Origin: Macrostomum lignano
Lineage: Eukaryota
Assembly: GCA_002269645.1 (NCBI GenBank)
Contig: NIVC01002298.1
Location: 62,001-126,000, forward strand
Reading direction: 5' to 3'
Length of the DNA: 64,000 nt
Shown here: piece by piece, positions 533 to 47,376 of the stretch
Position numbering within the stretch: position 1 is the first letter of the stretch
Layout: every line of letters begins with the position of its first letter
Notes under the pieces: model-generated
Database searches by the model: none
Told to the model about the DNA's origin: nothing
The model's input: only the letters and a program-made list of their open reading frames with translations
Program-made: the position numbers and the translations under genes

Positions 533-3500
533 GCGAGCTGATCGAAGCGGCCAAGAAGTGCCAGACGGCCGAGGACTACCGCCTCCTGGACGAGCGCATC
601 AAGCACGAGATGGGGCTGTTCCTTTATAACAACGGCGAGGGCAAGAAAGTGCACGTGTCCGAGCTGGTCAAGTATCGAACTCGGGACGGCAATCCGCCAC
701 TGGCGAAGTCCCCGGCCGGCCGGCACGGAAGGAGGTCGACCCCAACTGGCAACAATGTCTACCCCATGCTGGACATTGTCCACGCCGATACCGACGCCAC
801 GGGAACTTGCGTCAGCGGCGGTGGCGGCGGCGGCGGCACCAACCCGGAGGTTGACAACGGCTACAGGGACGTCTGCTGGGACCTGGAGCAGCGGGGCGCG
901 GTGGGCGAGACCTGCCTGCACCTGTGCTTCCTGAATGCCACGCCGATTCACATGGATGTAGCCAGGAGGATCATCGAGTTTTATCCCAAGGTGGTCAACG
1001 ACATCTACCTGCTGGACGTGTACTACGGCGAGGCTGTGCTGCACATCGCCATCTCCAACGAGGACCCGGTGATGGTGAAGTTCCTGCTGGATCACGGGGC
1101 CAACATTCACCAGCGCTGCTTTGGCACCTTCTTCGGCTGCGAGGATCAGAAGGACCAGAGAATCAGCTACCTGGATGACGAGTACCTGGACCTGAAGGTG
1201 GACACCAACTATGAGGGGTGAGCGGCTGGGAATTCTCTGCGGAGTTTCCAGGCTGGTAGAATTCTGCGATCAGGGAATTAATCCTGGAATTCTCTGCTTC
1301 TGCAAGGGAAGTTCTGTGTTGGGGCAAGGGGAATTCTGTGTTGAGGCAAGGGGAATTCTGTGTTGGGGCAAGGGGAATTCTGTTTTGAGGCAAGGGAATT
1401 CTGTTGAGGCAAGAGGAATTCTGTTTTGGGGCAAGGGGAATTCTGTTGAGGCAAGAGGAATTCTGTGTTGGGGCAAGGGGAATTCTGTGCTGGGGCAAGG
1501 GGAATTCTGTGTTGGGGCAAGGGGGATTCTGTGTTGAGGCAAGGGGAATTCTGTGTTGAGGCAAGGGGAATTCTGTGTTGGGGCAAGGGGAATTCTGTGT
1601 TGGGGCAAGGGGAATTCTGTGTTGGGGCAAGGGGAATTCTGTGTTGAGGCAAGGGAATTCTGTGTTGGGGCAAGGGGGATTCTGTGTTGAGGCAAGGGGA
1701 ATTCTGTGTTGAGGCAAGGGGAATTCTGTGTTGGGGCAAGGGGAATTCTGTGTTGGGGCAAGGGGAATTCTGTGTTGGGGCAAAGGGAACTCTGTGCAAG
1801 GACTAAGGGAATTATTTTTTTAAAGGAACTCCTACTGACGGATAAAGGCATGTCTGAGAGAATTCCTCTACAAGTTGGGAGAATTTTTACCGAATTTAAA
1901 TGCCAAGGAAATTCACTTTAGTATCAGGAAATTCCATGCTCTAAAAAGAGGATTCTACAGCTTCTCTCTCCTACTCCGCAGCCACGTGTACTGGGGGGAA
2001 TACCCCCTGAGCTTCGCCGCCTGCTGTGGCCAGGAGCAGTGCGTGCGGCTGCTGCTTTCGCGGAACGCCGACCCCAACAGGCAGGACACCAACGGCAACA
2101 CCGTGCTGCATATCCTGGTCATCCACCAGCCCAACATGAACTTGAAAATGGCGCAGAAACTCTTCATCCTGCTGGCGAACAAGCAGGCGCGGCTGGACAT
2201 CAAGAATAACCAGGGACTCACGCCACTCACTCTGGCCGCCAAGCTGGGGCGGATGGAGGTGGGTGACAGAGTGACGGGGTGACAGAGTGACGGGGTGACA
2301 GAGTGACGGGGTGACAGAGTGACGGGGTGACAGAGTGACGGGGTGACAGAGTGACGGGGTGACAGAGTGACGGGGTGACAGAGTGACGGGGTGACAGAGT
2401 GACGGGGTGACAGAGTGACGGGGTGACAGAGTGACGGGGTGACAGAGTGACGGGGTGACAGAGTGACAGGTGACAGGTTTGAGGTAGTAACCAATATTCC
2501 TATTTGTAAAATTAGTCCACAGCTTTGCATATCCTACTAAAAGTAGGTGAATAAAAATGTAAGCAGGCAAAATCCCAACCCGCCCCAGATGCACAACCTC
2601 ATCCTCATGCTCGACCGCGAAGTCCGCTGGCACTACGGCGATGTGATGTGCGTGGCTCATCCGCTGACTGAGCTGGACACCATCAGGCAGGACGGCTCCA
2701 TCAACAAGGACTCCTCGCTGATCTACATCGCATTCGGGGTGAGAGACATCTTCGATACCCTCTGAGCCCGTAGAAATTTTTTATCCCATATTCCACGGCC
2801 GTCTTTGATTCCATGAACACCTTTGATGCCATAGACACCTATGATCCCATAGACACCCTTGATCCCATAGAAACCTTTGATCCCATAGACACCTTTGATC
2901 CTATAGACAACTTTGATCCCATAGACACCTTTGATCCCATAGACAACTTTGATCCCATAGACACCCTTGATCCCATAGACACTTTTGATCCCATAGACAC
3001 CTTTGATCCTATAGACAATTTTGATCCCATAGACACCCTTAATCCCATAGACACCTTTGATCCCATAGACTCATTTGATCCCATAAACACATTTGATCCC
3101 ATAGACACCTTTGATCCCATAGACACCTTTGATCCCATAGACTCCTTTGATCCCATAAACACCTTTGATCCCATAGACACCTCTGATCCCATAGACACAT
3201 TTGATCCCATAGACTCCTTTGATACCATTGACACCTTTGATCCCATGGGCACATTTGATCCCATAGACTCCTTTGATACCATAGACACCTTTGATACCAT
3301 AGACTCCTTTGATCCCATAGACTCCTTTGATCCCATAGACTCCTTTGATCCCATAAACACCTTTGATCCCATATACACCTTTGATCCCATAGACTCCTTT
3401 GATCCCATAAACACCTTTGATCTCATAGACAACTCTGATCCCATAGACTCCTTTGATCCCATAAACACCTTTGATCTCATAGACACCTCTGATCCCATAG

Positions 3501-5029
3501 ACTCATTTGATCCCATAAACACCTTTGATCTCATAGACACCTCTGATCCCATAGACACATTTGATCCCATAGACTCCTTTGATACCATTGACACCTTTGA
3601 TCCCATAGACACATTTGATCTCATAGACTCCTTTGATACCATGGACACATTTGATCCCCAAAGATCCTTCCCCGAATCATTTCACATTCACATTTCACCT
3701 TTGATCCCATGGACACCTTTGATCCCATAGACACCTTTGATCCCATAGACACCTTTGATACCATAGACTCCTTTGATCCCATAGACTCCTTTGATCCCAT
3801 AGACACCTTTGATCGCATAGACACCTTTGAACCCATAGACACCTTTGATCCTATAGACACCTTTGAACCCATAGACGCCTTTGATCCCAGAGACACCTTT
3901 GATCCCATGGACACATTTGATCCCCAAAGATCCTATCCACCAATCATTTCACATTCCAATGTGCTGCTCCTAAATTTCCTTTCCTTGCATACCCGTGTAA
4001 TATTCCATTTTAGTCTAAGATCGAGCACCTCAACATGCTGGACGGAGTGGTGGTTCGCCTCCTGGAAAGGAAGTGGGAGACTTATGTGCGCAGACGGTAA
4101 GGCTCTGTGGCAGAGACAGGGGAGATGAGAAATGGGGAGATGGGAAATGGGGAGATGGGAAATGGGAAGATGGGCAATGAGGAGATGGGAAATCAGAAGA
4201 TGGACAATGGGGAGATCGAAAACGGGGAAATGGGGAGATGGGAAATGGGGAGATGAGAAATGTGGAGATGGGAAATGGGGAGATGGGAAATGGGGAGATG
4301 GGAAATAGGGAGATGGGCAATGGGGAGATCGAAAATGAGGAAATGGGAAATGAGAAGATGAAAAATGGGGAGATGGGCAATGAGGAGATGGGAAATGGGA
4401 CATGGAAGATCGGGAGATACGAGGATGGGAAAACTCGACCTCTAAGACTCGATTCCACTTGCATCCGCAGCTTCTTCCGCATGTTCTTCTCCTTCGCCGC
4501 CTATTTCGTGTTTTTCTTGACGGTGTTTCTGCTGCGGCCCGGCACGGACCGATACCCGAAGTCGATGGCGACCAACACCACCCTGGCCAACGGCACTGTG
4601 GTGACCACGGTGACCACGGTGAAGAGCAAATGCTACCTGCTGGCCACCCCCGACTGGGAGAGCTACGTGGGTTATTCTTGAAGTTCATTTTGTGTTTTTT
4701 AATCCATCGAAGTAAAGTTTGTTGCTTTTGAAATATTTTTTTCCGTATAATTTTAGCTTCGACTCGTATGTGAATGCATTGTGGTAGTCATGGCAACCAC
4801 TAATTTATGCTTCGTAACTAGGGACATCTATTACCAGGGCTTTCGAATCTACCTGATGATGCTGGTGAGTGCGGGGAGAGGGTTGATTGATGGAGGGAAT
4901 TTAATTTCATCTGAGACTCTGTAGCAAAAAATGGGAGAGAGTTGAGGGAAGAAACGAGTATTTTGATAGAAGTAGATGTCAGAATAGACAGTGGAGTAGA
5001 GAAAGCAGCCGGAGAGAGAGTAGAGAAGG

Positions 5030-5060
<31 letters not shown>

Positions 5061-8000
5061 TGAGAGAGAGAGAGAGAGTGAGAGAGAGAAAGAGAGAGTA
5101 GAGAAGGTAGATGGAGAGAGAGAGAGTAGAGAGGGTAGATGGAGAGAGTAGAGAAGGTAGATGGAGAGAGAGAGAGTAGAGAGGGTAGATGGAGAGAGTA
5201 GAGAAGGTAGATGGAGAGAGAGAGTAGAGAGGGTAGATGGAGAGAGTAGAGAAGGTAGATGGAGAGAGAGAGAGAGTAGAGAGGGTAGATGGAGAGAGTA
5301 CAGAAGGTAGAAGATAGAGAAAATAGACAGGGGCAGGAGTGCAGGCAGACAGGGGCAGGAGTGCAGGCAGACAGGGGCAGGAGTGCAGACAGACAGGGGC
5401 AGGAGTGCAGGCAGACAGGGGCAGGAGTGCAGGCAGACAGGGGCAGGAGTGCAGGCAGACAGGGGCAGGAGTGCAGGCAGACAGGGGCAAACTGCACCAC
5501 TCTGACAAGTCACCCTTCACACTCTGCAATGTTCGCAGAAAGCCACCCCCATGAGGTGCCTGTACCAGACCTCCTGCATCCTTGTGGTTGCCATGGTGCC
5601 CTGCCGGGCGGCCTGCGAGTCGCAGGTAGAAGACTACATCGCCGTCTTCGCCATCCTGTTCACGGCTCCGTACTTCCTGTTCTTCTGCCGCGGTTTCAAG
5701 ATTGTCGGACCCTTCGTGCTGATGATCTACCGGATGGTTGTCGGCGACCTGCTGCGCTTCTGCACCATCTACATCATCTTCATGATGGGCTTCTCGCAGG
5801 GTGAGTCTGGAAGAAGTGTACAATGTATGTTGTGGAGTCAGTCACGTGACTGATTAACCATGCCAAACCATGAGCAACATCCCTGATCTCTCCTCAACTC
5901 AGCTATGTTCATCGTGTTCCGCCGAGTCGATGCCAGCATCTTCCACGACCCCGGCGAGGCCCTGATGGGAATGTTCATCATGTCGCTGGGCGAGTTCGCC
6001 GAGATCTACGAGCAGTTCGACTGCTCATCGCACAGCAGCATGGGAAAGGTGAGCAACCTGCTCTGAAAGTCTTTAGCATTCTTTGAGCATACCAAAAGTG
6101 CAAGGCAAGCAATTCAATGTTTTTTCTACCATTCCAACCGCACAGTTCCTTTTCGTGGTGTACATGATCCTCGTGACGCTGCTTCTAGTGAACATGCTCA
6201 TTGCCATGATGGGGCATACCTTCGAGGCTGTCAATGAGACCCAGAAGGAATGGCTCCGTCAGGTGAGTTTAGTGCACTGTCGCCAGTATAAAAGCGTAAA
6301 TGTTGTCTAAAATTTTCTATCAATATTTAGATAGTCCTACTTACAGTAGATGGATTGTGCATGAAAAAGAGCACGCAGAGCTTGCATGAATAAACGGGGG
6401 ATTCGTTTAGAATGTTCATGCGTACATTGTTAGTCGGCCGTCAGTGGGGAATGTACATAGGGTAAACTGAGAAGAGAGAGAGAGAAAGGCAGGGTGGACA
6501 GTGACACTGTCAAGGCCTGCAGAATCGGACCACTCCGTACGTGCACCCTGAAGCAGAAACACAACTATTCTTGGTCCGTGGCTGCCCAACCTTGCCCTTG
6601 ATCTGTTATTTCACAACTCTATTATGCTATATAAGTTGAAGAATTGAATCAGCCTCAAAAGTGATCCGTTGAAAGTCTGTTTTGAGCTGAGTTCAACAAT
6701 CGCAAATAGCCATGGATCCGATGGCAGGCCTGGAGAATGCTCCAATGTCGGAGAAGTTATTCGCCTACATCCTGGTGAACTACCGCTGGGTGTTCGTGCT
6801 GCTCTTCCTGCTACCCCTGTCGCTGCTGTACGACGCATTCTTCTACGTGCGCAACAAAATCATTTTTCGATTGCGCAGCGCGCCCCGACAGCACGACGCT
6901 CGGGTGAAGGATGTGCAACGTCAGATCACAGCCTGGGCGGCCAGCGGCGGTCGGCAAAAGCTGTGCACCGCGCGCCCCGGCTGGCAGAACATGTCCTTTC
7001 GCAGGGGCAAATACAAGAAGACACACTACAATGTCAACGTCAATCTTATTGACATCTTGGAGGTGAATCCGAACTCCAGGACAGTCCGCTGCGAGCCGAT
7101 GGTGTCCATGGGCCAGCTGACGGCCACGCTGCTGCCCCTTGGCTGGACAATTCCCATCGTGCCAGAGCTGGACGACCTCACCGTCGGTGGCTTAGTCATG
7201 GGCACCGGCGTGGAGACTTCGTCGCACGCACACGGCCTCTTCCAGCACATCTGTGAGAGCTACGAACTAGTACTGGCCGACGGCAGTGTGGTCACTTGCA
7301 GCGCAACGGAGAACTCCGATTTGTTCTACGCTGTACCCTGGTCCTACGGCACTCTCGGCTTCCTCGTGTCCGCCACTATCCGCCTGATTCCGGCGCACTC
7401 TTTCGTCCGGCTCACCTACATCCCCTGCCATTCGCTAGAGGAGCTCTCCAAGACCTTTGCCGATGAGTCGGCCAAGCGCGAAGAGAATGACTTCGTCGAG
7501 GGCCTGGTATACTCAGCGGAGTCCGGCGTAGTCATGGTGGGCAAGTCCACCAACCAGGCTGACCCGGATCGCATCAACCGCATCGGGGACTACTGGAAGC
7601 CCTGGTTCTTCAAGCACGTCGAGCAGTTCCTCAAGACCGGTGGCGGAGTTGAGTTCATCCCCACAAGGCACTACTATCACAGGCATTCGCGCAGCATCTT
7701 CTGGCAGATGCAGGACATTGTACCGTTTGGAAACCACCCGATTTTCCGCTACCTGCTTGGCTGGGCCGTGCCGCCCAAGGTGTCCCTGATGAAGCTCACC
7801 CAAGGCGAGACGGTAAAGAAGATGTACGAAACTCATCAGATCATCCAGGACATGCTGGTGCCGATCACCGACCTGGCTGGTGCCATCAAGGTGTTCCACC
7901 GCGAGATCAACATGTACCCACTGTGGCTGTGTCCCTTCTACTTGCCCGATAATCCCGGCATGCTGCGACCCCGCGACGACCGCTCTCAGATGTACGTTGA

Positions 8001-9834
8001 CATCGGGGCCTACGGTGCGCCCAAGAACCCGGAGTACAAGGCTGAGGCCACAACGCGTAGGCTGGAGGCCTACGTGCGCGAGGTTCGCGGCTTCCAGATG
8101 CTCTACGCCGACACCTTCATGACCGAGTCCGAGTTCGAGGCTATGTTCGACCATCGGCTATACGACCGGCTGCGCGACAAGCTGGCTCGAACCAAGGACG
8201 CTTTTCCTCGCGTCTATGACAAGATCAATCGAAGTGCTCGAGACTGAGTTTAGCGGGAGACCAGCCGCTAACCTGAGCATCATCTTCCGTCCTGATCAAG
8301 TCGGTCTTGGACGGCGGAGTCTTTTAGTCTCAAAATTATTAACTTTTTTGCACAACTTCTGTTTTAATTTCGGTTGCTACAATTTATTTAGTTTTTGCAT
8401 GCTAGGATTATCTGATATTCTTGATTTGATATTGATGGACTTACTAACAAGGATTGTTGGTTGTTGTTGCTGTCTGGTTTTTAGTGGCAAAAAAATTCAT
8501 AAATAAATTTCTAAGCAGGTAGCTCTAAAGCATAATTTTGGTTCGTCAACATCTTACGGGACTTATAAAAAATGGGCGCATTCAGCTTATGTGCAGCAAA
8601 TTGTGTTTGGCCAAATGGGTTACACACCGGTAACTAAGCGGGTTAAACACCGGTGACTAAGCGGGTTACACACCGGTAACTAAGCGGGTTACACACCGGT
8701 GACTAAGCGGGTTTAACACCGGTGACTAAGCGGGTTAAACACCGGTGACTAAGCGGGTTTAACACCGGTAACTAAGCGGTTTACACCTGTGACTAACTGG
8801 TTTACACCTGTTACTAAAAGGTCTATGCATCAGTGGGGGGGGGTAACTAAACAAGTTACACCTGGAAATGAAAGGATTACACCTGCGTCTAACCTTGTAC
8901 CTTGAACATTCCAATCGAAACAAATACGTATATTGCAATCTCAACGCTGTCCCATCTATCCAACAACAGTGGGCCCGGATTCTGCTGGTAGTGGAGCAGA
9001 CCTTCACTCGGCAGGAGTGCCAGGCACACCAGGAGAGCTACTCCCAGCTGCTGCAAGACGGCCGTCGTGCTCTGGTAGTGCGCTGGAAAAGCGAGGTGAG
9101 ACTCTGATGACATCTTGAGCACACGCTGCACACCCTTTTCAACAGGCATTGGAAACCCGAACTGACGTGGTCGCGTGAAAATCGCCACTGTACCGGCAAG
9201 CACACCCTTGCCCTTTGAACACCTGTGGGCCCAGGTACACCCAAGTTGACTGAATTTAGAGACACTCCGTGCCAGGTGCAAAGTTCAAATAATAAATAGA
9301 ACCACGTAACAAAATTACACCGCAAAAATTAATCAAAGTCTACGCTGACAATTGACAGAGAGCTTATCAGCGATGGCAAATTACTTGCACGTGACTGCTT
9401 AAAATCTGACCATACTGCTGCAAGTAGAGCAGTTTGGATAAGTGAAACATTTTAAACAGACCCACCCGAAGGTTACTGCGATATCGAATTTCTCATCGCG
9501 GAGTGCGCTGGGTGGCAGATTTCAGTAATTAAAAGCCGATCTCCGGCCGGCAGTGATTGACGGCACGTGCTGCTCAGGCTTTGCTGGGGAGTTGCTAGAG
9601 AGATTACCTGGATTAGCTAATCCCCAGAATCACCTCTGCTTGTTGCAGGACGACGAGAACAACAACTTGCTGGGCCGGAAGAGGCGCGTAGTTTCTGCCG
9701 AGCAGAAGATCGTGGAGGATCAGGAGCTCCGACGCGAGATGGAGACGTCGCTGATGAATCAGTCTGCTGCGACAAGCGGCGAGGAGCGAGCAGCCGCCAC
9801 CGAGGCTGGGAGCAGCACACCGGTGCAGTGCTGA
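533..9834 (+). CDS. nan: TRPV cation channel, Nanchung/OCR subfamily (5'-truncated; 11 exons in window)
   Basis: Exons 533-1217, 1982-2258, 2589-2738, 4014-4096, 4471-4666, 4757-4864, 5539-5800, 5903-6048, 6146-6262, 8970-9095, 9649-9834. All junctions are GT-AG with compatible phases. The spliced protein has ankyrin repeats ([78 protein letters not shown]), TM segments ([33 protein letters not shown]), pore/S6 ([21 protein letters not shown]) and TRP-box region [14 protein letters not shown]. These motifs match my recollection of Drosophila Nanchung better than Inactive/OSM-9. Confidence 0.93.
1300..1800. repeat. 22-bp G-rich minisatellite (GGGGCAAGGGGAATTCTGTGTT) in TRPV intron 1218-1981
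   Basis: Directly visible tandem units; explains the overlapping repetitive ORFs at 1163-1851. Confidence 0.95.
2262..2475. repeat. 16-bp minisatellite (GTGACGGGGTGACAGA), ~13 copies, starting at the TRPV donor 2259
   Basis: Near-perfect tandem units immediately after GAG|GTGGGT. Confidence 0.95.
2815..3930. repeat. 18-bp minisatellite (GATCCCATAGACACCTTT) in TRPV intron 2739-4013
   Basis: Tandem 18-mers give DPIDTF/SMGSKV pseudo-ORFs; a related interruption (GATCCCCAAAGATCC...AATCATTTCACATTC) occurs at ~3654 and ~3920. Confidence 0.95.
4125..4430. repeat. ~15-bp purine-rich minisatellite (GGGAGATGGGAAATG) in TRPV intron 4097-4470
   Basis: Visible tandem units. Confidence 0.9.
5030..5300. 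repeat. (GA)n plus GAGAGTAGAGAAGGTAGATG-type purine repeat
   Basis: Visible low-complexity purine tract in TRPV intron 4865-5538. Confidence 0.9.
5325..5490. repeat. 22-bp minisatellite (ACAGGGGCAGGAGTGCAGGCAG)
   Basis: About 7 near-identical tandem units. Confidence 0.9.
6628..6635 (+). promoter_or_regulatory. Candidate TATA box (TATATAAG) for the nested DHCR24
   Basis: Consensus-like TATA ~85 nt upstream of ATG 6712; motif only, no transcript evidence. Confidence 0.3.
6712..8247 (+). CDS. DHCR24: Delta(24)-sterol reductase (DHCR24/seladin-1/diminuto-like), intronless, nested in TRPV intron 6263-8969
   Basis: Uninterrupted 511-aa ORF with an N-terminal hydrophobic segment ([15 protein letters not shown]), FAD-binding motifs ([68 protein letters not shown]) and C-terminal [51 protein letters not shown]. 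An alternative start is Met at 6745. Confidence 0.96.
   Translation: MDPMAGLENAPMSEKLFAYILVNYRWVFVLLFLLPLSLLYDAFFYVRNKIIFRLRSAPRQHDARVKDVQRQITAWAASGGRQKLCTARPGWQNMSFRRGKYKKTHYNVNVNLIDILEVNPNSRTVRCEPMVSMGQLTATLLPLGWTIPIVPELDDLTVGGLVMGTGVETSSHAHGLFQHICESYELVLADGSVVTCSATENSDLFYAVPWSYGTLGFLVSATIRLIPAHSFVRLTYIPCHSLEELSKTFADESAKREENDFVEGLVYSAESGVVMVGKSTNQADPDRINRIGDYWKPWFFKHVEQFLKTGGGVEFIPTRHYYHRHSRSIFWQMQDIVPFGNHPIFRYLLGWAVPPKVSLMKLTQGETVKKMYETHQIIQDMLVPITDLAGAIKVFHREINMYPLWLCPFYLPDNPGMLRPRDDRSQMYVDIGAYGAPKNPEYKAEATTRRLEAYVREVRGFQMLYADTFMTESEFEAMFDHRLYDRLRDKLARTKDAFPRVYDKINRSARD
8502..8507 (+). terminator. Candidate polyadenylation signal AATAAA for DHCR24
   Basis: AATAAA ~255 nt after the stop, following a U-rich 3'UTR-like stretch. 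Confidence 0.4.
8620..8780. repeat. 23-bp minisatellite (CCGGTGACTAAGCGGGTTAAACA)
   Basis: CCGG recurs at 8627, 8650 and onward; about 7 units. Confidence 0.9.
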
Positions 9835-9953: not shown

Positions 9954-10009
9954 AATTTGGAGGTGTTCTGGTATATTGTATGATAGAGAATCGACTCACT
10001 CAACTCTCC

Positions 10010-10320
10010 TCTCTTCTACTATGCGCTACTCTCCCGACTCTACTCTCCTCAACACTATTCTACTCTCCCGAATCTACTCTCCTCTCCTCTCCTCTTCTCT
10101 CCTCCACTATACTCTACTCTACTATCTCTACTCTCCTTTCCTCTACTCTACTCTACACTACTCTACTCTACTCTACTCTACTCTACTCTACTCTACTCTA
10201 CTCTACTCTACTCTACTCTACTCTACTCTACTCTACTCTACTCTACTCTACTCTACTCTACTCTACTCTACTCTACTCTACTCTACTCTATTCTACTCTA
10301 CTCTACTCTTATTCTCCTCC
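10010..10320. repeat. (CTCTA)n pentanucleotide microsatellite
   Basis: Perfect core ~10140-10310 with degenerate flanks. Confidence 0.95.
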
Positions 10321-12236: not shown

Positions 12237-15200
12237 ATGCTGTCTCACGCGCACTACCGACTGGCGGACACAGCAGCTCCCGCTATGCAGCCCGAGAATG
12301 GCACTGCTGCCGCCACAGAGCTGGACGAATTCGGCGGTGGCCTCAACGGAGCCGGTGGTGGCGGCATGACAGATCCCGGACCTGCGAATGGGCGTAAGTT
12401 TTATGCTGAACTATTTACAGTTTATATTGAATCTGAAAATCTCAGCTAGAGTAGAGAAGCTGGGAATCTACCGTTTTTGTCCAACAACTTTTCTCGCTTA
12501 CTCATAGTCATACTGAAGTGCTTGTACTCATGCCCTTCTGCTCACCCACAGTGTCTGAACTTCTTTCAATAATAGTTCAGTAAGTTCACCGTGTCTGACC
12601 CCCTTCCAGTTCACTGTTCACCCACAATGTCTGACCCCCTTCCAGTTCACTGTTCACCCACAATGTCTGACCCCCTTCCAGTTCACCCATAGTGTCTGAT
12701 GACCCCCTTACCAATCCACAGGTTCTGACCCCCTTCCAGTTCACCCATAGTGTCTGACCCCTTCCAGTTCACTGTTCACCCACAATGTCTGACCCCCTTC
12801 CAGTTCACTGTACTGTTCACCCACAATGTCTGACCTCTTTCCAGTTCACCCATAGTTCTGACCCCCCTTACCAATTCACAGGTTCTGACCCCCTTCCAGT
12901 TCACCCATAGTTCTGACCCCCCTTTCCAATTCACACAGTGTCTGACCCCCTTCTGTTCACCAGTGCCTGACCCCCCTTCTGTTCACCCAGTGTCTGACCC
13001 CCCTTCTGTTCACCCAGTGTCTGACCCCCCTTCTGTTCACCCAGTGCCTGACCCCCTTGGCCAGGTCTGATTCATAGATTTTGTCAGCAAAATTCAAATG
13101 AGATGTGTGCTAAATAACAATAGAATTTATGCTTCACAAGGCAATTTGCTTGTTTTAATGCCATGCATATTGCATTATGTTCTGTCCAGGGCCCCAGACC
13201 TTCATTGGCCATAACTATGGCAATAAATTCAGTAAATAATATACTTATGTTTTGTATATACCAACTTAATTTGCAAAATTTATATAAAACAGACCCTTGT
13301 GGCAGTAAAGCAGGTATATATTTATAGTTTTGCTTTCGTGAATAATTGTGGCTAGCTGAGGTGGGTGAACCAGTGAGGCATGACTTGTAATCTGGTGGTA
13401 GTATGAATCATTTTGACTATTGCAAATGCAAATTATGCATAATCTTTCTTTACTATGCACTATGCTGTGCCTGTGCCCAGTCCACTGCTGGGCGGATCAC
13501 TTCTGACTGGATGGGGGGGGGTCATAAATCTACTTTTTATCTCACGGAGCAATAAATCTGCTAGTGTCCAATGAGTGCGCCTATGCTAGCACCCTGCTGG
13601 TGCCCTCACCTGGCGCCCCTCATATTTCCTAGCACTCTGGCGTCCCGCATATCCCCTGTTGGCGTCCCTCATATCCCCTGTTGGCGTCTCTCTCATCCCC
13701 TGTTGGTGTCCCTCATATCCCCTGTTGGCGTCCCTCATATCCCCTGTTGGCGTCTCTCTCATCCCTGTTGGCGTCTCTCTCATCCCTGTTGGCGTCCCTC
13801 TCATCCCTGTTGGCGTCTCTCTCATCCCCTGTTGGCGTCTCTCTCATCCCTGTTGGCGTCCCTCTCATCCCATGTTGGCGCCCCTCTCATCCCCTGTTGG
13901 CGCCCCTCTCATCCCCTGTTGGCGTCCCTCTCATCCCCTGTTGGCGTCCCTCATATCCCCTGTTGGCGTCCCTCATATCCCCTGTTGGCGTCCCTCAAAT
14001 CCCCTGTTGGCGTCTCTCATATCCCCTGTTGGCGTCTCTCTCATCCCCTGTTGGCGTCTCTCTCATCCCCTGTTGGCGTCCCTCATATCCCCTGTTGGCG
14101 TCTCTCTCATCCCCTGTTGGCGTCCCTCATATCCCCTGTTGGCGTCCCTCATATCCCCTGTTGGCGTCCCTCATATCCCCTGTTGGCGTCTCTCTCATCC
14201 CCTGTTGGCGTCCCTCATATCCCCTGTTGGCGTCCCTCATATCCCCTGTTGGCGTCTCTCTCATCCCTGTTGGCGTCCCTCATATCCCCTGTTGGCGCCC
14301 CTCATCCCCTGTTGGCGTCTCTCTCATCCCCTGTTGGCGTCCCTCTCATCCCTGTTGGCGTCCCTCTCATCCCCTGTTGGCGCCCCTCTCATCCCATGTT
14401 GGCGCCCCTCTCATCCCCTGTTGGCGCCCCTCTCATCCCCTGTTGGCGTCCCTCTCATCCCCTGTTGGCGTCCCTCATATCCCCTGTTGGCGTCCCTCAT
14501 ATCCCCTGTTGGCGTCCCTCATATCCCCTTTTGGCGTCTCTCATATCCCCTGTTGGCGTCTCTCTCATCCCCTGTTGGCGTCTCTCTCATCCCCTGTTGG
14601 CGCCCCTCTCATCCCCTGTTGGCGCCCCTCATCCCCTGTTGGCGTCTCTCTCATCCCCTGTTGGCGCCCCTCTCATCCCCTGTTGGCGCCCCTCTCATCC
14701 CCTGTTGGCGTCTCTCTCATCCCCTGTTGGCATCTCTCTCATCCCCTGTTGGCGCCCCTCTCATCCCCTGTTGGCGCCCCTCATCCCCTGTTGGCGTCCC
14801 TCTCATCCCCTGTTGGCGTCTCTCTCATCCCCTGTTGGCGCCCCTCTCATCCCCTGTTGGCGTCCCTCTCATCCCCTGTTGGCGTCTCTCTCATCCCCTG
14901 TTGGCGCCCCTCTCATCCCCTGTTGGCGCCCCTCTCATCCCCTGTTGGCGTCTCTCTCATCCCCTGTTGGCGCCCCTCTCATCCCCTGTTGGCGCCCCTC
15001 TCATCCCCTGTTGGCGTCTCTCTCATCCCCTGTTGGCGCCCTCTCCCCGCCCCTGTTGTGTTAGCGCCCTTTACACTCTGGCGCCAGGGTGGGGGCGCCA
15101 AAGTGGGGGGTACTAGAGTGGGGGCGGGGCGTCAGGGTGGCGGCGCCATAACCTTGGCGCCCCTCACACTCCCTGAGCGGCTCTTTAGCATATTGACCAC

Positions 15201-18200
15201 ATCTCATTTGGCCGAGGGAAATTTGACAAATGACAAACTTTCAACGCGATCTGATCATGCGGTCAGCCCGGTATGTGATGCCCGCACTGATGGTTATTGA
15301 GTTAGCAGACCCGCAGCCCTCCTGCAATGTTTGATCGATTGTAGCAATCAAATATCGAGACAATGGGGTCTGCCCAGCCTCTTATTGGCTTCCCCATCTC
15401 CGCCATATGATTGTCCTCCCCGTTTTTATTCATGATTGATGCATTTTGCATATTGAATACGTGAGATATTGAGCGCTGAGTTCAGCTGGGCCTGTCTTAA
15501 CTCCGAGAGTTGTTCGAGTCAGACACGGGAAATCCGAAGTGATTAATCGATTACATTGTCAATTGAGTCGCTTCTGTGGGAACCGCCGGGACAGCATCAC
15601 ATTTATCTCCCATTTTTGGTTGTAACTGCATGGATTAAAATGAGCGAATCGATGAATACTTTGGCATTTTCACTTGGGGATCTGAGTCTTCCTGGGGACC
15701 GCGGTGCCATTTGGGATCTCTGATCCTTCATCACGGGGTGTCATTTGGGATCTCTGATCCTTCATCATGGGGTGCCATTTGGGATCTCTGATCCTTCATC
15801 ATGGGGTGTCATTTGGGATCTCTGATCCTTCATCACGGGGTGTCATTTGGGATCTCTGATCCTTCATCATGGGGTGCCATTTGGGATCTCTGATCCTTCA
15901 CAGGGTGTCATTTGGGATCTCTGATCCTTCACGGGGTGTCATTTGGGATCTCTGATCCTTCATCACAGGGTGTCATTTGGGATCTCTGATCCTTCACGGG
16001 GTGTCATTTGGGATCTCTGATCCTTCATCATGGGGTGCCATCTGGGATCTCTGAGCCTCCATGGTGGTGCCATTTGGGATCTCTGAGAATTCACGGGGTG
16101 CCATTTGAGATCTATAATACTTAGTTCCTCCTATCTATGCTTAGGCTGCTGGACAAAAGTAAGACAAAAGGCGAATCAAGGCGAATCTGCACATTCAAAT
16201 TAAGGAGGAACTTGCAGTCAACTATAAAAATGTCTCCGATTTAGCTCCATCCCCTTCCATTGTAAACTAAATGCAAAATCCCCAAATTTCACCTGCGCTT
16301 TTAATGGGGGGGGAGATTGTTGGTTGGTTCGATGGGTTTTGCTCTCAAGGCTGAGGGGGAGCGCGAAGGTGCCCGGGTTAATTGGGGGGGGGGCATTTGG
16401 GATCTATGGCTTGGGAACTGCAGCGGCTTAATTAAAAGTGCCCACCCCTGCACCCCCGGCCCTACCAGTCTTCAGAGGGTCTTCAGCCTCCCGTTTCTCC
16501 TCCTCATCTCCCCTTTCTTCCCCACGGCGGCCGCCCTTCCTCTTCATCGCGAAGAACGAGGGGGCAGGGAAGGCATTAGCGGCTTAATTGCCAAGGGGTG
16601 TTGGTATTTGTCCTGCGGCTCGCCTGCGGAGGAGTCGAGCTTATTTTTAAAGCGAAAGGAAATAATAATATATGGAGCGGGTGAAACTCGATGGGGAGTT
16701 AATATTTGCCTCTGCATATTTAATAAACTCTTGGCCCGATGATTGAGGCTGGACCGGTGGGCCTTAATTAAAAACTTATTTATCCCCTCCGCTGCCACCA
16801 TCTGATCCCCTTGCTGCCGCACCTGGTTAACATAAACTGCAGTTCGCGGACATCGCTGCATACTGCAGGGAAGGATGAGGCGCCCCCCAGCGGCAGTGCA
16901 GTTTGTATGCTCAGTTTGCAATCAGCTGGCTCACAGGGGATCGGGGGATTAATAAAAGTCCGACAATCCTGCAGCAGCCGCTGGGGATTTGCAGATGATT
17001 CTGAATTTCTGAGTATAGCGATGACTTGCATGTACAAAATTCGTTTATTATCGGATTAGCAATAGCGCTGGGATTTCGGCTTTGGGATTCCCGCGGCGTG
17101 CATGTTTTAATGCTCCATTTGAGGCTGGCTGTATAGAAAGTATTAAAAATGAAAAGGTAATATAGGGATTATACCTGGTAATTCTATCAATTACAGCCAT
17201 GCCCTGACTAGCAGGCCTGTCTGCTTGCATACAGCATGTTTAAGGAAGAACAAGCGTGCTGCAGCTGAAGCGGGAGCCCACAGCCGGCCCTAATTCAGAA
17301 CTGGGCCAGACGGAGGCTGAATTTATCGATTGCAGGTTGCAATTTAAAACTTTTGCGCACAAGACGGACCGGTGTAGACTTGGAAATTTAAGGCAAATTT
17401 GCCCTACGCAAATGGCTGCGGCGGCGGTTCTCCCACAAGGCCAAATCCCTAAAGAAGAAAATCAGCTGAGAGCACAGGATGCCATGTAGTCTAGCTGGCT
17501 TGCCAGGTAACTAAATTAAAAATTATATAATGAATGATGTTAAGGTGAAAAGAACAGTCAACAATGGCGAAAAGCGAAAATTGCCTCCTACAGTTGCCAC
17601 TCTCAGGCCAGCGCAGGCGCAGGCAGCGGTTAACAAGTTAACAACTAGCAGCAGCCGGTGCTGAAGCAATTATTGGCCCAATTTGCTGCTGCTTTTCGCC
17701 ACCAAGGCAAACAAAAACGCAAGCGGACTCGTGGGGGGGGGGCAGGCAGGCAAAGCAGGCCAGTCGCAGAAAGAAGCTGCGTGCATTGGATTAGGAGCTT
17801 AGGGATAAGGTAGGGCAGCTATTTTCTAAGTCCTGAATACGATGGGAGCCCCCTTAGCTGGACCCGTTTCCCTTTCCAATAACCAATCCAACCAAACCAA
17901 TGAATTGAGAGCGCTGAGCTGACTGACGACTGCTTGCTGGACTGGATTTGCAGGGTGGGGTCTTGAAGGAGGGTGGCTGGGGTCGTCATTTAATTGCGAT
18001 TTGACCAGTTTGTTTACCCGACTTGGTCTTGGGCTGGGGTGGCTTTGGTTCGCCTGTTGTGTGTTGGCTTGATGGTCTGGAGAACCCCCCCCCCTCAAGC
18101 CCCGCAAATCCACAAACATAGAGGGAGGGGGTGAAGGAGGACACATCACAATTGCAGAGCTATTAATTAGGCCTGTTTATTCTGCCATCAGCCAGCCAGC

Positions 18201-21200
18201 CGTCCCCGAGTCTGAGCAAACAGTTGTGATAAAATGAATTTTGTCGCCTTTAATAGGGGGCCGGGTTGGCTTATTCTGTACGCGGCGGGCTAATTAATTG
18301 CTTCGCGCCAATGTACACTAAGTCAGTGTACACGCATTCACGCGAGTGTACATTGGATAAGCCTTATCAATCTATACAGCTCCGTCAGCTCGTAACAGCG
18401 CGCGCTTGCGAGAGAAATTTTAAAAGTTCCTCAAAGTCGGCCGTTGACGAAGCATAGATTACGCTTTCTAGGCTCGAACTTACGAAGCAGCTTATGCGAG
18501 AAAAATCGCAAGTCAAGGAGGAGGACTGGACTGGGTAGGACCGAACAACAGCCAAACCAGAGCCTTGTCTTTCTCCTGTCTCACTCCCCGGGAGCCTAAT
18601 GATGCTAATTAAAAATTTCGTAGGAGTCAGCGGCTTAGGTTTGGTAGGCTGGACGCCAGTGAGCGAGGTTAATAAAGCAGGGCTACTGGGAAAGAGGCCT
18701 CGGCCTGTGGGAGGGGAGTGGGGAGGCCAGCGGACGGGAGGTCAATACTTAATTAGACACAGAAGGGCTGCTTCTCCCATCTCCCAACCCCGGCGCTCCT
18801 CGCCTCCCCAAATCTTCTCCGTTGCTCCTCCCAATCTTGGCCATCGGGCCGAGACGTGTGTCTTAATTGATGTCGAAATAATTGCATGAAATGCTACAGA
18901 TTGGGATTGGGGCGACACAGATGAGCGCGAGGGAAATGAGAGGGAGAAACAGGAGAGAGAAAAGTGGAGTTTTCTTCTGCTCCCTTCCTGCAAGAATTCT
19001 CCCAAACCGAAGGCCTCCAAATCCTCTATTGCTTACTTCCTTTTGCCAACCTCATTTGCCTCTCGACTCTCACTCTCCTCTTGCCTCCCCAATTCTCCCC
19101 TTTTTCTTATATTTTTTCTCCACTCTCTCTTTACTTTCAATTACTTTCTCGCCGCCCAGTTGCAAGCCCGACCGTCCGTGTAATTAATGTTTCCAACTGC
19201 CCCCCCCCCGAGTCCCCTCTTGACGTCTCCACACTTCTCTCCCGCTGGCCTCCGCTCTCCGACCCTCTCTCGGCTGCTGCTCTATTTTTTACGCAGACCC
19301 CCCTCACCTTCGGTTTCTGCCATCCATCCTAGGAGAGTCTCCTCTGCTACCTGACTGTGCGCTGCAGCCTCTTTCAAATTAACGCAATTAGTATCAGGTT
19401 ACGCAGGCGAAAGTCGGGAAGGCGACGAGGCGCGCGCAGATAAATGAGCGAATAGGGGGGGGGTGTTTGTACGAGGGCCGGGCGAGTGTCAGGTGGGAGT
19501 GGGAGGCAGGGGAGACGCACAGGGGCAAACTTAAAAACACAACCAGCTGGATAGGCGGAGGACAGCCGCCGGAAAATTGCTTCAATTACAGCTTCTGCAT
19601 AATTCCCCCCCCTCGCCCGCGATGGCCTGCTTCTTCTCTTCTTGTGCCTCTTTTTGCTTCGTAATTTGCCTGCGTCATTCTCTGCCTTTTTATTCTCTTT
19701 ATCCTGATGTCCTGGGATAATTATTATTCCTCACATTTCCACTGTTTGCCCCAGCGAAATCGAAAGCTCCTATGCTTGAGCCTGCATGCAGATGCCCTGT
19801 ACTTTACGAATGTAAACATCTGCAGGAGGGCTTCGGGCACCCTGGTGCTCGCACTCATACGCATGCTCACACAGGGTGTACAACAGCCCTGAATTTCATG
19901 TACACTCTCTGTGACTTGGGGGTGGGCCCTCATGTAGCCGTGGATCACACGACAACCCACCAGACGCGAGTCGTATGCGCTTACCACTGAGCTGCTCGGC
20001 CCCCAATCATGTACTATCATGTACTATCATCTACTATCGTGTTATCATGTACTATCATGTACTATCATGTACATCATGTACTATCATGTACTATCATGTA
20101 CTAAGGATCAACAGAAACTCCCAACGCCTCCACCCCCGCAGGCCACCCAGCGCACCACACGGCCGCCGTGATGTCGATGTCAGCCGGAGTGGCCTGGTGC
20201 GCGGGCTGCGGCTGCCAGATCACCGAGCAGTTCCTGCTGCAGGCCGTCGACCGCTGCTGGCACACCCGCTGCCTGAAGTGCTACCAGTGCGGCTGCGCCC
20301 TGTGCGACCTGGGCGACTCCTGCTACTCGCGCGGCGGCATGATCCTGTGCAGGAATGACTATCTCAAGTGAGTTGGCGGCCTGCTCGAGAGAGGGTGAGG
20401 AGTTGAGAGCAAGAGACGGAGGGAGAGGGAGGCTGAGAAAGTAAGTGCACAAACGGAAGGCACAAGGTCTAATAAGAGAAAGACAAATAGGAGAGAGAAA
20501 AGCCTAGTTTGACTACCGTCTACCGATATGTATCGTAGTTAACTAGTGAAGCAGGCGAATTCAATTCGAATCCCAGTTTTGCGTACAGTTTTATTCTCAG
20601 GCCGCACGCACTCAGATCCTCAAATCGAATTTCAATCCCAAAGTCAGAGTGGAGCAGCAGCATAAAAGGGGTGAGAGAAGGCAACTGTTGGGTGGGCCCT
20701 GAGCAAATGGATGATGGAGTTAGGCTGAACGCGGGAGTCAGATAAAGCTCCGCATATAAGTGAATTCCGAGAAAACTCCCCTCTCAGCTACGTGACATGT
20801 TTTGATGGAGCTCGCGGCGGAGGGAGGCTGGGGGATGGAGCAAGGCCTTCCCGGCAATTAACTTTAATGATGCCTGCCCGGCCATTGACTCGCGTATAAA
20901 TTGGGTGTATAAAATGTATGTCTATCGCAACCGAGGCCTAATTGCCCGCGTAATAATTACGCTAATTATATTAGAACCCGTATATATATATATATATATG
21001 TGTGCATATATATAAAATTCAGGCCTGCCCCAGCCCCAGCCTGCCCTGCTGGTAATTTTGCTGATGACTTCGTTGTGTGCCGTGTGTGGGTGGGGGCTGA
21101 GAGGCTGAGCTGGTGGGTGCGTTATCTCGCCACCGCAATAATGGCCCCCGGGCCGCCCAGCGCCCCCTCGATTGCTGATAACGGGCCCTGCAATCTTCAA

Positions 21201-22740
21201 TTCGGTCTATTGTGTGATTTATTTGTTCTACCTGCAACGCTGCAATAGGCTGGGCGCAATCTTTTTTAGAATTATACAATATCTGATTATATCTGTTTTG
21301 AGTGAGATATCCGTGCAATCAGGCCTTTCCGGGAAAAAACTATTTTAAGTGCTCTCCTGAAGTATAACAACAAACAGCTGTTCCTTCTGGCCAATTAATT
21401 TATTTTATCAGTTATCCGCCATAAATCTTTGCAATTTTCCTTAGCCCCCCTCCCCACCCCACACTCCACTAGCCGATTTTTCATAGTCGCATTGTCATGA
21501 AAATGCGTAAATGGCACGTAATTTCCAAGGCATTTTATGTGTCCTCTAACCGTTCGCAAAATAAATTAGTCTGACTATTGTAACAGCGCTAATAAATAAA
21601 AGGCTCATAAAAAGTAACTTTGGGCAAGACTTTCAAGCACAAATAAAGCTCATCTGATGAGACCCTAGCACAGCCCAGCCGCCCCAAGCCCCTCCCCGAT
21701 AAGATCCTAACACAACACAGCCACCCCAAACCCCTCCCCGATAAGATCCTAACACAACACAGCCACCCCAAACCCCTCCCCGATAAGATCCTAACACAAC
21801 ACAGCCACTCCAAACCCCTCCCCGATAAGACCCTAACACAACACAGCCACCCAAACCCCTCCCCGATAAGATCCTAACACAACACAGCCACCCCAAACCC
21901 CTCCCCGATAAGATCCTAACACAACACAGCCACCCCAAACCCCTCCCCGATAAGACCCTAACACAACACAGCCACTCCAAACCCCTCCCCGATAAGACCC
22001 TAACACAACACAGCCACCCAAACCCCTCCCCGATAAGATCCTAACACAACACAGCCACCCCAAACCCCTCCCCGATAAGATCCTAACACAACACAGCCAC
22101 CCCAAACCCCTCCCCGATAAGACCCTAACACAACACAGCCACTCCAAACCCCTCCCCGATAAGACCCTAACACAACACAGCCACCCAAACCCCTCCCCGA
22201 TAAGATCCTAACACAACACAGCCACTCCAAACCCCTCCCCGATAAGACCCTAACACAACACAGCCACCCAAACCCCTCCCCGCTAAGACCCTAACACAAA
22301 ACAGCCACTCCAAACCAATCCCCTCAGACGCTTGTAAAATCAACCAACGCACAACCTCATCGATTCTTCAGGATGTTCGGCAGCCAAGGCACCTGCTTCG
22401 GCTGCTCGTCGCCCATTTCCGCCACTGAGTTCGTGCTGCGATCCCACAACAAAGTTTACCACGTGAATTGCTTTGTCTGCTCGCACTGCCACTCGCAGCT
22501 GCAGCCGGGGACCGCTACGCCATCGCCAACGGCCTGCCAGTCTGCGAGGGTGACTTCCCCAAGGTTTTTGGCGCACAGCAGCAGCAGCAGCCGGCTGGGC
22601 AAGCGACAACCGGCAACAAGCGTGGCGGCGGCAAGAAAAAGCAGCCAACGCAGAAACAACAACAACAGCAACAACAGCAACAACAACAACAGCAGCAGTC
22701 AGCAGCCAATCAGAGCGGGCAATTGCAGTCAGTTTGCTAG
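12237..22740 (+). CDS. LMO4: LIM-only protein, LMO4-like (two LIM domains, poly-Q tail); 1-nt frameshift in exon 3 as assembled
   Basis: Exons 12237-12393 (AAAAATG; donor GTAAGT), 20142-20367 and 22372-22740 with matching phases 1 and 2. LIM1 is CAGCGCQITEQFLLQAVDRCWHTRCLKCYQCGCALCDLGDSCYSRGGMILCRNDY. LIM2 is MFGSQGTCFGCSSPISATEFVLRSHNKVYHVNCFVCSHCHSQLQPG/DRYAIANGLPVCEGD, split across two frames at the G run 22507-22510. Exon 1 is less certain than exons 2-3. Confidence 0.85.
12590..13060. repeat. Degenerate ~25-35 bp minisatellite (TGTCTGACCCCCTTCCAGTTCAC...) in LMO intron 1
   Basis: Visible tandem units. Confidence 0.85.
13650..15050. repeat. ~22-bp minisatellite (TCATCCCCTGTTGGCGTCTCTC) in LMO intron 1
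   Basis: About 1.4 kb tandem array; the unit lacks stops on +, giving three overlapping ~500-aa pseudo-ORFs. Confidence 0.95.
15700..16110. repeat. 31-34 bp minisatellite (ATTTGGGATCTCTGATCCTTCATCACGGGGTGTC)
   Basis: About 12 visible units. Confidence 0.9.
20028..20100. repeat. 10-bp repeat (CATGTACTAT) just upstream of LMO exon 2
   Basis: Visible tandem units. Confidence 0.85.
21660..22320. repeat. ~42-bp minisatellite (CCCAAACCCCTCCCCGATAAGATCCTAACACAACACAGCCAC) in LMO intron 2
   Basis: About 15 units ending ~50 nt before the exon 3 acceptor. Confidence 0.95.
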
Positions 22741-26739: not shown

Positions 26740-27180
26740 ATGGGGAGAGGGGAGAGAGAGGAGAGATGGGATAGAGGAGAGAGGGGAGACAGGGGAGAGA
26801 GGGAATAGAGGTAAGAGAGGAGAGAGGAGAGACGGGAGAGAGGGGAGAGAGGGAATAGAGGGAAGAGAGGAGAGAGGGGAGAGAGGGGATGGGGAGAGGG
26901 GAGAGAGAAGATGGAGGGGAGAGAGGGGAGAGAGGGGAGATAGGGGATAGAGGGGATAGAGGGGAGACAGGGGAGAGAGAGTAGAGAGGAAAGAGAGGAG
27001 AGAGAGAAGAGAGAAGAGAGGAGAGAGGAGAGAGGAGAGAGGGTAGAGAGGGGATAAAGAGGGGAGGGGGGAGAGGAGAGTGGAGAGAGAGGGGATAGAG
27101 GGGGGAGGGGGATAAAGAGGGGAGAGAGGGAGAGAGGGGAGAGGGGAGACAGGGGATTGAGGGAAGAGGGGAGAGGGGAA
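26740..27180. repeat. GA-rich low-complexity polypurine tract
   Basis: Almost entirely G/A. Confidence 0.85.
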
Positions 27181-44790: not shown

Positions 44791-44954
44791 TGGCTGCGAA
44801 GCCTTAAGTCCATTTTGTACAGTGCGTTCATTATCAGATTGCCAATAATTTTCTAAATATGGTTTTAATTGAATCAGTAATTACATTATGAATTATGTGT
44901 GAATGTACAGTATGCGTTTTTAGCCAGTACTGCTTATAGACATGTCTGTTTATG

Positions 44955-47376
<2,422 letters not shown>

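Follow-up and report, generated by a model that had tools for sequence, protein, structure and literature searches.

How does a complete, uninterrupted sterol reductase gene come to lie on the same strand inside an intron of an ion channel gene, and how might the two genes be expressed side by side? This question is raised by a 64,000-nucleotide stretch of Macrostomum lignano DNA (assembly Mlig_3_7, GCA_002269645.1, NIVC01002298.1:62001-126000; hereafter the window), in which a first, sequence-only reading had placed a DHCR24 gene within an intron of a TRPV channel gene. Re-checking the locus, we found its coordinates for guest, intron and host exons all to be correct, and we confirm a same-strand nested gene pair, with DHCR24 as the guest and an orthologue of nanchung (nan; TRPV) as the host. 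The sequence-only reading had also correctly taken the DNA for that of a flatworm. This pair is real but of an ordinary kind, and it leaves current understanding unchallenged. The features that carry the argument are listed here in window coordinates.

533-1217, 1982-2258, 2589-2738, 4014-4096, 4471-4666, 4757-4864, 5539-5800 and 5903-6048, plus strand: host exons 1-8 in the window, encoding ankyrin repeats and S1-S5/pore
6146-6262, plus strand: host exon 9, encoding the S6 helix and first half of the TRP box; ends KEWLRQ, donor gtgagt
6263-8969, plus strand: host intron enclosing the guest; phase 0, GTGAGT..CAG, 2,707 nt
6628-6635, plus strand: TATATAAG, candidate TATA box and putative promoter element, 84 nt before the start codon of the guest
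6712-8247, plus strand: coding sequence of the nested guest DHCR24 (delta(24)-sterol reductase); single exon, 511 aa plus stop
8502-8507, plus strand: AATAAA, candidate guest poly(A) signal, 255 nt past the stop codon
8617-8817, no strand: tandem repeat with a 23-nt unit, 8.9 copies, in the tail of the intron that separates the guest from host exon 10
8970-9095, plus strand: host exon 10, encoding the second half of the TRP box; acceptor cag, starts WARILLVVE
9649-9834, plus strand: host exon 11, which closes the coding sequence and carries the stop codon

Rebuilding the host gene gave 11 in-window exons (533-9834) with GT..AG borders throughout and a single open frame of 777 aa, a model that begins after about 35 N-terminal residues lying upstream of 533; its exon 11 is matched at 98% in two further copies of the locus (L004, L005). 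Pfam searches of this model returned Ank, Ank_2, Ank_3, Ank_4 and Ion_trans, an order of ankyrin repeats followed by a six-transmembrane domain, while comparison with PDB structures scored the Nanchung chains (9nvs, 9nvn, 9nvo) at 627 bits, Inactive at 339 and TRPV5/6 at 208 at most. Judged from its sequence, the host is a Nanchung-type TRPV channel, as first proposed, and a mechanosensory role is predicted for it. It shares with insect Nanchung (PDB 9nvn/9nvo/9nvs, Nanchung-Inactive complexes) the ankyrin repeats and the six-transmembrane ion-transport domain, and its TRP box corresponds to the insect one, which reads EWQRQWARIVLVVE; unlike the insect protein, the flatworm model is without its N-terminus, and the flatworm orthologue carries a gene within its TRP-box intron.

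That intron is the longest of the 10 host introns in the window. The host frame had been said to stop at 6262 and to resume in phase at 8970, and the alignments agree: both boundaries of the exon 9-exon 10 junction (EWLRQ/WARILLVVE, the slash marking the intron) are in phase 0, and the joined peptide is an unbroken TRP-box sequence in the PDB Nanchung alignment and in the homologues P0121, P0126 and P0127 (..EWxRQWAxI..). A nan-like gene of the shrimp Penaeus chinensis (L009) possesses an intron of 27.5 kb at the identical position (..NEWMRQ/WARIVLVVE), and the neighbouring exon borders, including those of the host's C-terminal exons, are common to both genes. Because the junction peptide is continuous in homologues, the phases match and Penaeus has the same intron, the exons that flank the guest are parts of a single host gene. 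Since a crustacean has it at the same position, the intron itself is ancient and can be placed before the flatworm-arthropod split; with such an intron between otherwise continuous TRP-box exons, DHCR24 is the newcomer.

The guest reading frame (6712-8247) lies wholly within the intron, starts 449 nt past the end of the upstream host exon, and runs on the plus strand in a plus-strand host, so that the direction of transcription is the same for both, as the sequence-only reading had it. The tandem repeat downstream belongs to neither gene and varies in copy number among the three genomic copies of the locus. No non-coding RNA or SL RNA gene was found within the window. The encoded protein has one Pfam match, PF01565 FAD_binding_4 (FAD-binding PCMH-type; residues 64-197, E = 4.8e-14, 52.7 bits against a cut-off of 26.4), and its matches to named DHCR24s are collinear over 96-100% of the query with E down to 1e-233, a full-length similarity that bears out the claim of a complete gene. 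Among named proteins it comes closest to the delta(24)-sterol reductases from Lingula, Mytilus and Lineus (62-65% identity), vertebrate DHCR24s match it at 58-60%, and a neighbour-joining tree places it among spiralian/animal DHCR24s. By this family assignment it is predicted to reduce the sterol C24-C25 double bond. Shared with the FAD-linked DHCR24/seladin-1 proteins of animals are about 58-65% full-length identity, the FAD_binding_4 domain and a hydrophobic N-terminal segment, and its 511 aa compare with their 505-524 aa.

All 511 codons read through without interruption in the window, in L004 and L005, and in two Logan contigs from the Macrostomum clade (L001, L006) that we used as partners for dN/dS, which is 0.045 against the former and 0.057 against the latter (dS 0.87-1.5). 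The open frame and these values mark the guest as kept in function under strong purifying selection. It is already called as a gene in GCA_002269645.1. All M. lignano DHCR24 sequences that we found fall within one 90% cluster, and the fetched loci of this cluster (the window, L004 and L005) are intronless and nested; only one DHCR24 family was found in the species, with three near-identical genomic copies, all nested. Our literature search returned nothing relevant on Mlig024933, flatworm DHCR24 or Macrostomum sterols.

Where the guest departs from its relatives is in gene structure and surroundings. DHCR24 of the brachiopod Lingula (L007) and of the nemertean Lineus (L008) has at least 8 exons in each and stands head-to-head with a UHRF1-like gene, whereas the flatworm gene consists of one exon, as the claim of a guest without introns implied, adjoins no UHRF1-like gene and has nan exons as its immediate neighbours. 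From this difference it follows that flatworm DHCR24 lost all of its introns and moved. Loss of every intron together with a changed neighbourhood is the classical signature of a retrocopy. A sister DHCR24 sequence (L002, 69% identity) is also uninterrupted, and the 1.9 kb upstream of it, on a contig of only 3.6 kb, yielded no nan exon with E as high as 100. Perhaps the guest became nested only after its own introns had gone, or perhaps that organism has a longer host intron.

As sources of the guest, retroposition and gene acquisition had both been suggested, along with a phylogeny and a search for an intron-containing parent copy. In the phylogeny the guest falls among animal DHCR24s, and its GC content at third codon positions (GC3 0.79) is close to that of the host (0.82-0.85); given this grouping and the native codon usage, we reject foreign acquisition by horizontal transfer. 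Retroposition stays plausible from the intron loss and relocation, and is the simplest route to an intronless, relocated DHCR24, but the traces that would mark it directly were not found. The only A runs after the guest stop are A7 at 8489 (upstream of AATAAA) and A6 at 8567, no direct repeat pairs an arm upstream of 6712 with an arm downstream of 8247, no inverted repeats were found around the guest, and the search for an intron-bearing parent among the M. lignano DHCR24 sequences retrieved (the one 90% cluster) came back empty.

The explanation that we favour, and hold to be reasonably probable as a whole, is that of a processed DHCR24 copy nested in the nan intron and acting as an independent transcription unit. 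An ancestor of macrostomid flatworms would have made a processed (retroposed) DHCR24 copy that shed about 7 ancestral introns and quit the ancestral UHRF1-DHCR24 neighbourhood; the intron-bearing parent would have been lost later, and the copy would since have been held under strong purifying selection. Within the host, the guest would start from a promoter of its own, TATATAAG at 6628, and its transcripts would end by way of a separate poly(A) signal, the AATAAA at 8502; the host would be transcribed straight through it, and the guest would leave with the spliced-out intron. Being without introns, it would offer no strong splice donors to the host pre-mRNA, as is usual in same-strand nested genes.

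It is from sequence and homology that we infer the guest's promoter and poly(A) site and the splicing of exon 9 onto exon 10. Both the TATATA at 6628 and the AATAAA at 8502 pointed out earlier are present, the former (TATATAAG) identical in all three paralogous copies, which are too similar to show constraint, and the latter the only canonical hexamer between the guest stop and the host acceptor. Further hexamers of both kinds lie in the same intron, TATAAA at 6287 and AATAAA at 6389, and such hexamers occur about as frequently as chance allows at its 42-43% GC; because of these second copies, the hexamers taken alone would carry little weight. Splicing of exon 9 to the AGs at 6685-86 or 6708-09 (25 and 2 nt ahead of the guest ATG) would be out of frame, so that a fusion protein is not indicated, again in line with the sequence-only reading. 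In 3,000 synonymous-codon shuffles of the guest reading frame, depletion of splice-like and poly(A) motifs was not significant (for GTRAG, 1 observed against 2.3 expected, P = 0.30), and hence there is no direct sign of selection against mis-splicing.

Could the arrangement itself be false, with the DHCR24 segment set between these two nan exons by assembly or annotation? M. lignano assemblies are duplicated and repeat-rich, and existing protein models of the region are fragmented or chimeric, which would suit such an artefact. Checking 6263-8969 for misassembly, a possibility already raised by the sequence-only reading, we found the order nan exon, DHCR24, nan exon to be common to three separate contigs of GCA_002269645.1 (L003, which is the window, L004 and L005; about 99% identity) with neutral differences spread over the entire segment, and this identical order speaks against misassembly. 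The older ML2-based UniProt models likewise have DHCR24 directly ahead of the nan 3' exons, and the intron has canonical borders, the correct phase and a position conserved in shrimp, all of which makes an artefact exceedingly improbable. A more serious alternative concerns how the guest arose, since introns could have been lost gradually, or by cDNA-mediated gene conversion in place, and a duplication, transposition or rearrangement at the DNA level could have carried the gene into the nan intron. The missing poly(A) tail, target-site duplication and parent copy all favour such a history, as does the intronless L002 sequence with no nan exon close upstream, where the gene may have lost its introns on one occasion and become nested on another. 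So does the low average number of introns per M. lignano gene (71,499 genes with about 187,627 cis-splice junction regions between them, on one reading of PMC8629364): with genes intron-poor in general, stepwise intron loss followed by a DNA-level move becomes possible. This poverty also weakens the earlier argument for retroposition from the contrast between guest and neighbours, of which it stands that the host keeps at least 10 introns. Against a non-retrogene origin, about 7 ancestral introns are gone without exception from the guest while several of those kept by the host are common to shrimp, and total intron loss with a new neighbourhood is what a retrocopy classically leaves. The scars of retroposition would, moreover, be expected to have decayed, as synonymous divergence in the clade is already saturating (dS about 0.87-1.5). 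We consider an origin other than retroposition to be improbable, though it carries some weight.

The other alternatives concern expression and retention. SL trans-splicing acts on 30% of M. lignano genes, and operons account for about 15% (PMC8629364); DHCR24 might therefore lack a promoter of its own and be released from the nan pre-mRNA by the 35-nt spliced leader at an AG near the ATG, as in an operon; guest and host share a strand, AGs lie 2 and 25 nt ahead of the ATG, and the AG at -4/-3 is also present in L001 and L006. Neither AG, however, matches the M. lignano SL acceptor motif YTNCAG (PMC8629364), their contexts being TTTTGAG (6685-86) and AAATAG (6708-09), and upstream of the guest ATG in the intron this motif occurs only at 6341 and, nearest, at 6517, at chance frequency. 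The conserved AG would be equally explicable as Kozak context, and a canonical TATATAAG stands 84 nt upstream of the ATG. The spliced-leader sequence is absent from the window, as expected. Short non-SL flanks occur in L001 and L006, including at their 5' ends, in contigs that may not be RNA-derived, although L006 ends 15 nt past an ATTAAA, which hints that it is mRNA. The insect nan/iav channel is confined to few sensory neurons, and if the same applies to flatworms, a broadly needed sterol enzyme would be unlikely to depend on a sensory-channel promoter. With M. lignano SL operons (Ustyantsev & Berezikov 2021, PMC8629364) the locus has in common two same-strand genes that could share a primary transcript, but the guest sits in an intron rather than past the 3' end of the upstream gene, and its 5' end has a candidate TATA box and no YTNCAG acceptor. 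We judge full dependence on trans-splicing to be unlikely, and give still lower odds to an "intronic operon" in which DHCR24 would come at least partly from the nanchung primary transcript via SL trans-splicing within the intron; if this were true, host exon 9-10 splicing would face competition from the acceptor and poly(A) site of the guest, and each host transcript would become either channel mRNA or sterol-reductase mRNA. That nesting persists through co-regulation of DHCR24 and Nanchung gating, for example through a sterol-sensitive channel, draws on physical linkage alone, retained in three recent copies, which as duplicates of about 99% identity are uninformative on long-term retention. 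No nan exon was found beside the sister DHCR24 in L002, and in Drosophila the correlation of nested genes with their hosts, in expression as in function, is lower than that between neighbouring pairs (PMC3814207); we deem such coupling very improbable.

The favoured reading, a retroposed and independently transcribed guest, can be set beside nested genes elsewhere. Nested genes had been described as usually antisense, and the Drosophila survey (Lee & Chang 2013, PMC3814207) does give 71% antisense, but with about 29% on the same strand the rarity of the present orientation was overstated. In the same survey 72.5% of same-strand nested genes are single-exon, and an intronless same-strand guest is the expected form and fits a known pattern. 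The flatworm pair shares with the fly pairs a guest within one intron, on the same strand and intronless, a long multi-exon neuron-type host and a likely RNA-based origin of the guest, whereas nested genes in flies tend towards recent origin, fast evolution and a testis bias and the flatworm guest is old, strongly constrained and of a housekeeping type. Also unlike them, the guest is apparently the sole DHCR24 of its species, and M. lignano has in SL trans-splicing an extra processing route absent in flies. With orphan retrogenes, flatworm DHCR24 has in common that the ancestral introns are all lost, the neighbourhood is new, the parent is undetectable and selection is purifying; neither a poly(A) tract nor target-site duplications, the scars by which such genes are defined, can be seen, and for this reason the retrogene assignment is inferential.

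The main practical effect of the nesting is that automatic annotation of the channel gene is broken. The GenBank Mlig_3_7 record calls DHCR24 and has no gene across the nan exons, while older UniProt entries split the channel into A0A1I8HKS5 and A0A1I8HK68 and, in A0A1I8HD04, fuse DHCR24 to the channel's 3' exons. Research on sterol metabolism or on TRPV mechanosensation in this flatworm would be misled by such models. Transgenesis is feasible in M. lignano, which also uses SL trans-splicing, and the locus could serve as a small test of how an intron tolerates a poly(A) signal on its own strand and potential acceptors for trans-splicing. In evolutionary terms, it illustrates cleanly how an essential metabolic gene can survive solely in a copy that has lost its introns and changed place, most probably an orphan retrogene.

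Rebuilding the host gene model from sequence and homology, we found a complete, intronless DHCR24 on the same strand as, and inside an intron of, the TRPV gene nan, which bears out the main observation of the sequence-only reading, whose interpretation overall was partly supported.

Features of the host gene nan (rebuilt model), the guest DHCR24 and the intron-tail repeat
533-1217 (+), host exon 1 in window
1982-2258 (+), host exon 2 in window
2589-2738 (+), host exon 3 in window
4014-4096 (+), host exon 4 in window
4471-4666 (+), host exon 5 in window
4757-4864 (+), host exon 6 in window
5539-5800 (+), host exon 7 in window
5903-6048 (+), host exon 8 in window
6146-6262 (+), host exon 9 in window
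6712-8247 (+), DHCR24 ORF, 511 aa, one exon
8617-8817, 23-nt tandem repeat (GGGTTAAACACCGGTGACTAAGC), 8.9 copies, between guest 3' end and host exon 10
8970-9095 (+), host exon 10 in window
9649-9834 (+), host exon 11 in window

On the strength of homology, we interpret the ORF at 6712-8247 as a genuine DHCR24, and full-length as had been claimed: its 511-aa product carries a FAD_binding_4 domain (Pfam), is matched over 96-100% of its length by named delta(24)-sterol reductases in a protein search, and shares 62-65% identity with Lingula, Mytilus and Lineus and 58-60% with vertebrate DHCR24s. This exact protein is already a called gene on NIVC01002298.1 of assembly GCA_002269645.1 (Mlig_3_7). 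Two related DHCR24 sequences taken from public reads (L001, 93% amino acid identity; L006, 87%) are both uninterrupted, and guest dN/dS against them was 0.045 and 0.057, at dS of 0.9-1.5, so purifying selection on the guest is strong.

For the host, every border of the 11 in-window exons is GT..AG and the joined exons form a single open 777-aa frame, with ~35 N-terminal residues outside this model placed upstream of them. A C-terminal TRPV query from the window had 100% and 99% identity to UniProt M. lignano entries. The host protein possesses ankyrin repeats and an ion-transport domain; its score was 627 bits with solved Nanchung chains, 339 with Inactive and no more than 208 with vertebrate TRPV5/6, so that the label "Nanchung-type" proved correct. 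The proposed junction, ...KEWLRQ/WARILLVVE..., is unbroken both in Nanchung (NEWQRQWARIVLVVE) and in further homologues, so the exons flanking the guest are parts of a single gene. Of the ten host introns in the window, the guest-bearing one is the longest (2,707 nt). In a nan-like gene of the shrimp Penaeus chinensis (L009), exon borders fall at ...NEWMRQ / WARIVLVVE... and adjacent borders also coincide with those of the host; this comparison dates the guest-bearing intron to before flatworms and arthropods diverged, which makes DHCR24 the later arrival. The shrimp counterpart of the intron (L009 20880-48431) spans 27.5 kb; two ORFs of 1047 aa each within it (25720-28863 and 33052-36195, same strand) are probably copies of a repeated mobile element.

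Misassembly is a very unlikely source of the nested arrangement. On two further contigs of GCA_002269645.1 (L004, L005) the same nan exons flank DHCR24 at the same distances as in the window, and protein models built on the older ML2 assembly likewise have DHCR24 immediately ahead of the nan 3' exons. Coding-sequence dS between the three copies is 0.02-0.03, and the number of 23-nt repeat units in the intron tail differs among them (9, 9 and 11 by simple motif count), which explains the greater part of their intron-length difference. Three nested copies with ~99% intron identity are in keeping with the genome duplication known for the sequenced DV1 line (PMC8629364).

In the brachiopod Lingula anatina (L007 1-7986) and the nemertean Lineus longissimus (L008 1-7211), DHCR24 has at least eight exons and sits head-to-head with a UHRF1-like gene (ubiquitin, TTD, PHD and SRA domains), and therefore the M. 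lignano gene shed every intron and left its neighbourhood; the pairing is conserved microsynteny that is gone from M. lignano. Total intron loss with relocation is the classical signature of a retrocopy, and retroposition is the likely origin of the guest, as the sequence-only reading had offered along with gene acquisition. The searches found no poly(A) tract or target-site duplication around the guest, and no intron-bearing parent is evident among the M. lignano DHCR24 sequences found, all of which fall in one 90% cluster. A 69% identical DHCR24, on the 3.6-kb contig L002, branches in the NJ tree as the sister of the Macrostomum clade and is likewise uninterrupted, which makes the intron loss old; within the 1.9 kb upstream of this DHCR24 on its contig, no nan exon was detectable. 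M. lignano is generally intron-poor (PMC8629364). Acquisition from outside the lineage found no support, since the guest protein sits among animal DHCR24s in the NJ tree and its GC3 (0.79) matches that of the host (0.82-0.85); non-coding parts of the intron have 42-43% GC.

As for expression, two motifs fit an independent transcription unit of ~1.85 kb for the guest: a candidate TATA box, a canonical TATATAAG 84 nt upstream of its ATG, and AATAAA at 8502, the only one between the guest stop codon and the host acceptor. Both motifs had been pointed out earlier (the TATA at 6628) and both are present, with single hexamers being weak evidence because the same intron also holds AATAAA at 6389 and TATAAA at 6287. 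The three copies are too alike to reveal constraint on these candidate promoter and poly(A) motifs, and, compared with synonymous-codon shuffles, the guest ORF was not depleted in motifs resembling splice donors or acceptors, nor in poly(A) motifs. The L006 contig (1549-1638; from SRR30276804) stops 15 nt past ATTAAA and 89 nt past the stop codon, which suggests that the contig derives from an mRNA whose 3' UTR is short; M. lignano DHCR24 has no canonical poly(A) signal as near its stop codon. Release of the guest from host pre-mRNA by SL trans-splicing seems improbable: M. lignano does trans-splice 30% of its genes to CGGTCTCTTACTGCGAAGACTCAATTTATTGCATG (PMC8629364), but the AGs near the guest ATG do not fit YTNCAG, the published acceptor motif, whose nearest occurrence, at 6517, is no more than chance would give, and Kozak context accounts equally well for the AG at -4/-3, conserved in related sequences. 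Host exon 9 joined to the AG at 6685-86 or to the one at 6708-09 would not share the DHCR24 reading frame (offsets of 25 and 2 nt), so, in agreement with the earlier reading, a fusion protein is not indicated.

Nested genes are common. In Drosophila (PMC3814207), ~10% of genes are nested or carry a nested gene, with 71% of nested genes antisense and 29% same-strand, and the single-exon shares are 72.5% for same-strand versus 37% for antisense nested genes, an excess that has been read as selection against mis-splicing; expression and function also correlate less within its nested/host pairs than between neighbouring genes. The M. lignano guest stands slightly apart: it is an enzyme gene that is old and under constraint, not a young duplicate that evolves fast, it is apparently the sole DHCR24 of its species, and it resides in an animal with SL trans-splicing. 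A link between sterol reduction and TRPV gating finds no support in our data. For a same-strand nested gene, DHCR24 in nan has the form one would expect.

Elsewhere in the window, short-period tandem repeats are abundant (2774-3727, 4100-4400, 4940-5500, 9994-10309, 13571-15300, 34806-35535, 41963-42961, 44899-47421), yielding long spurious ORFs in several frames, also within nan introns, and the nan stop codon is closely followed by an (ACTCT)n array of 64 copies; the genome of M. lignano is repeat-rich, and such repeats are typical of it. Downstream of nan, the next called gene, from ~12237 onward (+) (L003, the window locus, 15526-21536), encodes a LIM-domain protein. Two overlapping ORFs at 37440-38368 (+) with Mos1/mariner-type HTH domains (HTH_48, and HTH_32 just under the Pfam cut-off) are probably a frame-shifted mariner-like transposase remnant.

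At all three loci the GenBank Mlig_3_7 record calls DHCR24 and leaves the nan exons without a gene call. At the 6712-9834 locus, three UniProt models based on the older assembly are incorrect: A0A1I8HKS5 (P0122) is a nan fragment ending with the exon that stops at 6048, A0A1I8HK68 (P0139) takes the intron tail at 8868-8969 as coding, and A0A1I8HD04 (P0178) is a chimera of DHCR24 and the nan 3' exons of the TRPV gene with two frame changes, skipping the DHCR24 stop codon by joining a weak CAA/GTCGGT donor near 8303 to the exon at 8970. Both the nested structure and the nan model as corrected here, with 11 exons, are useful for annotation.
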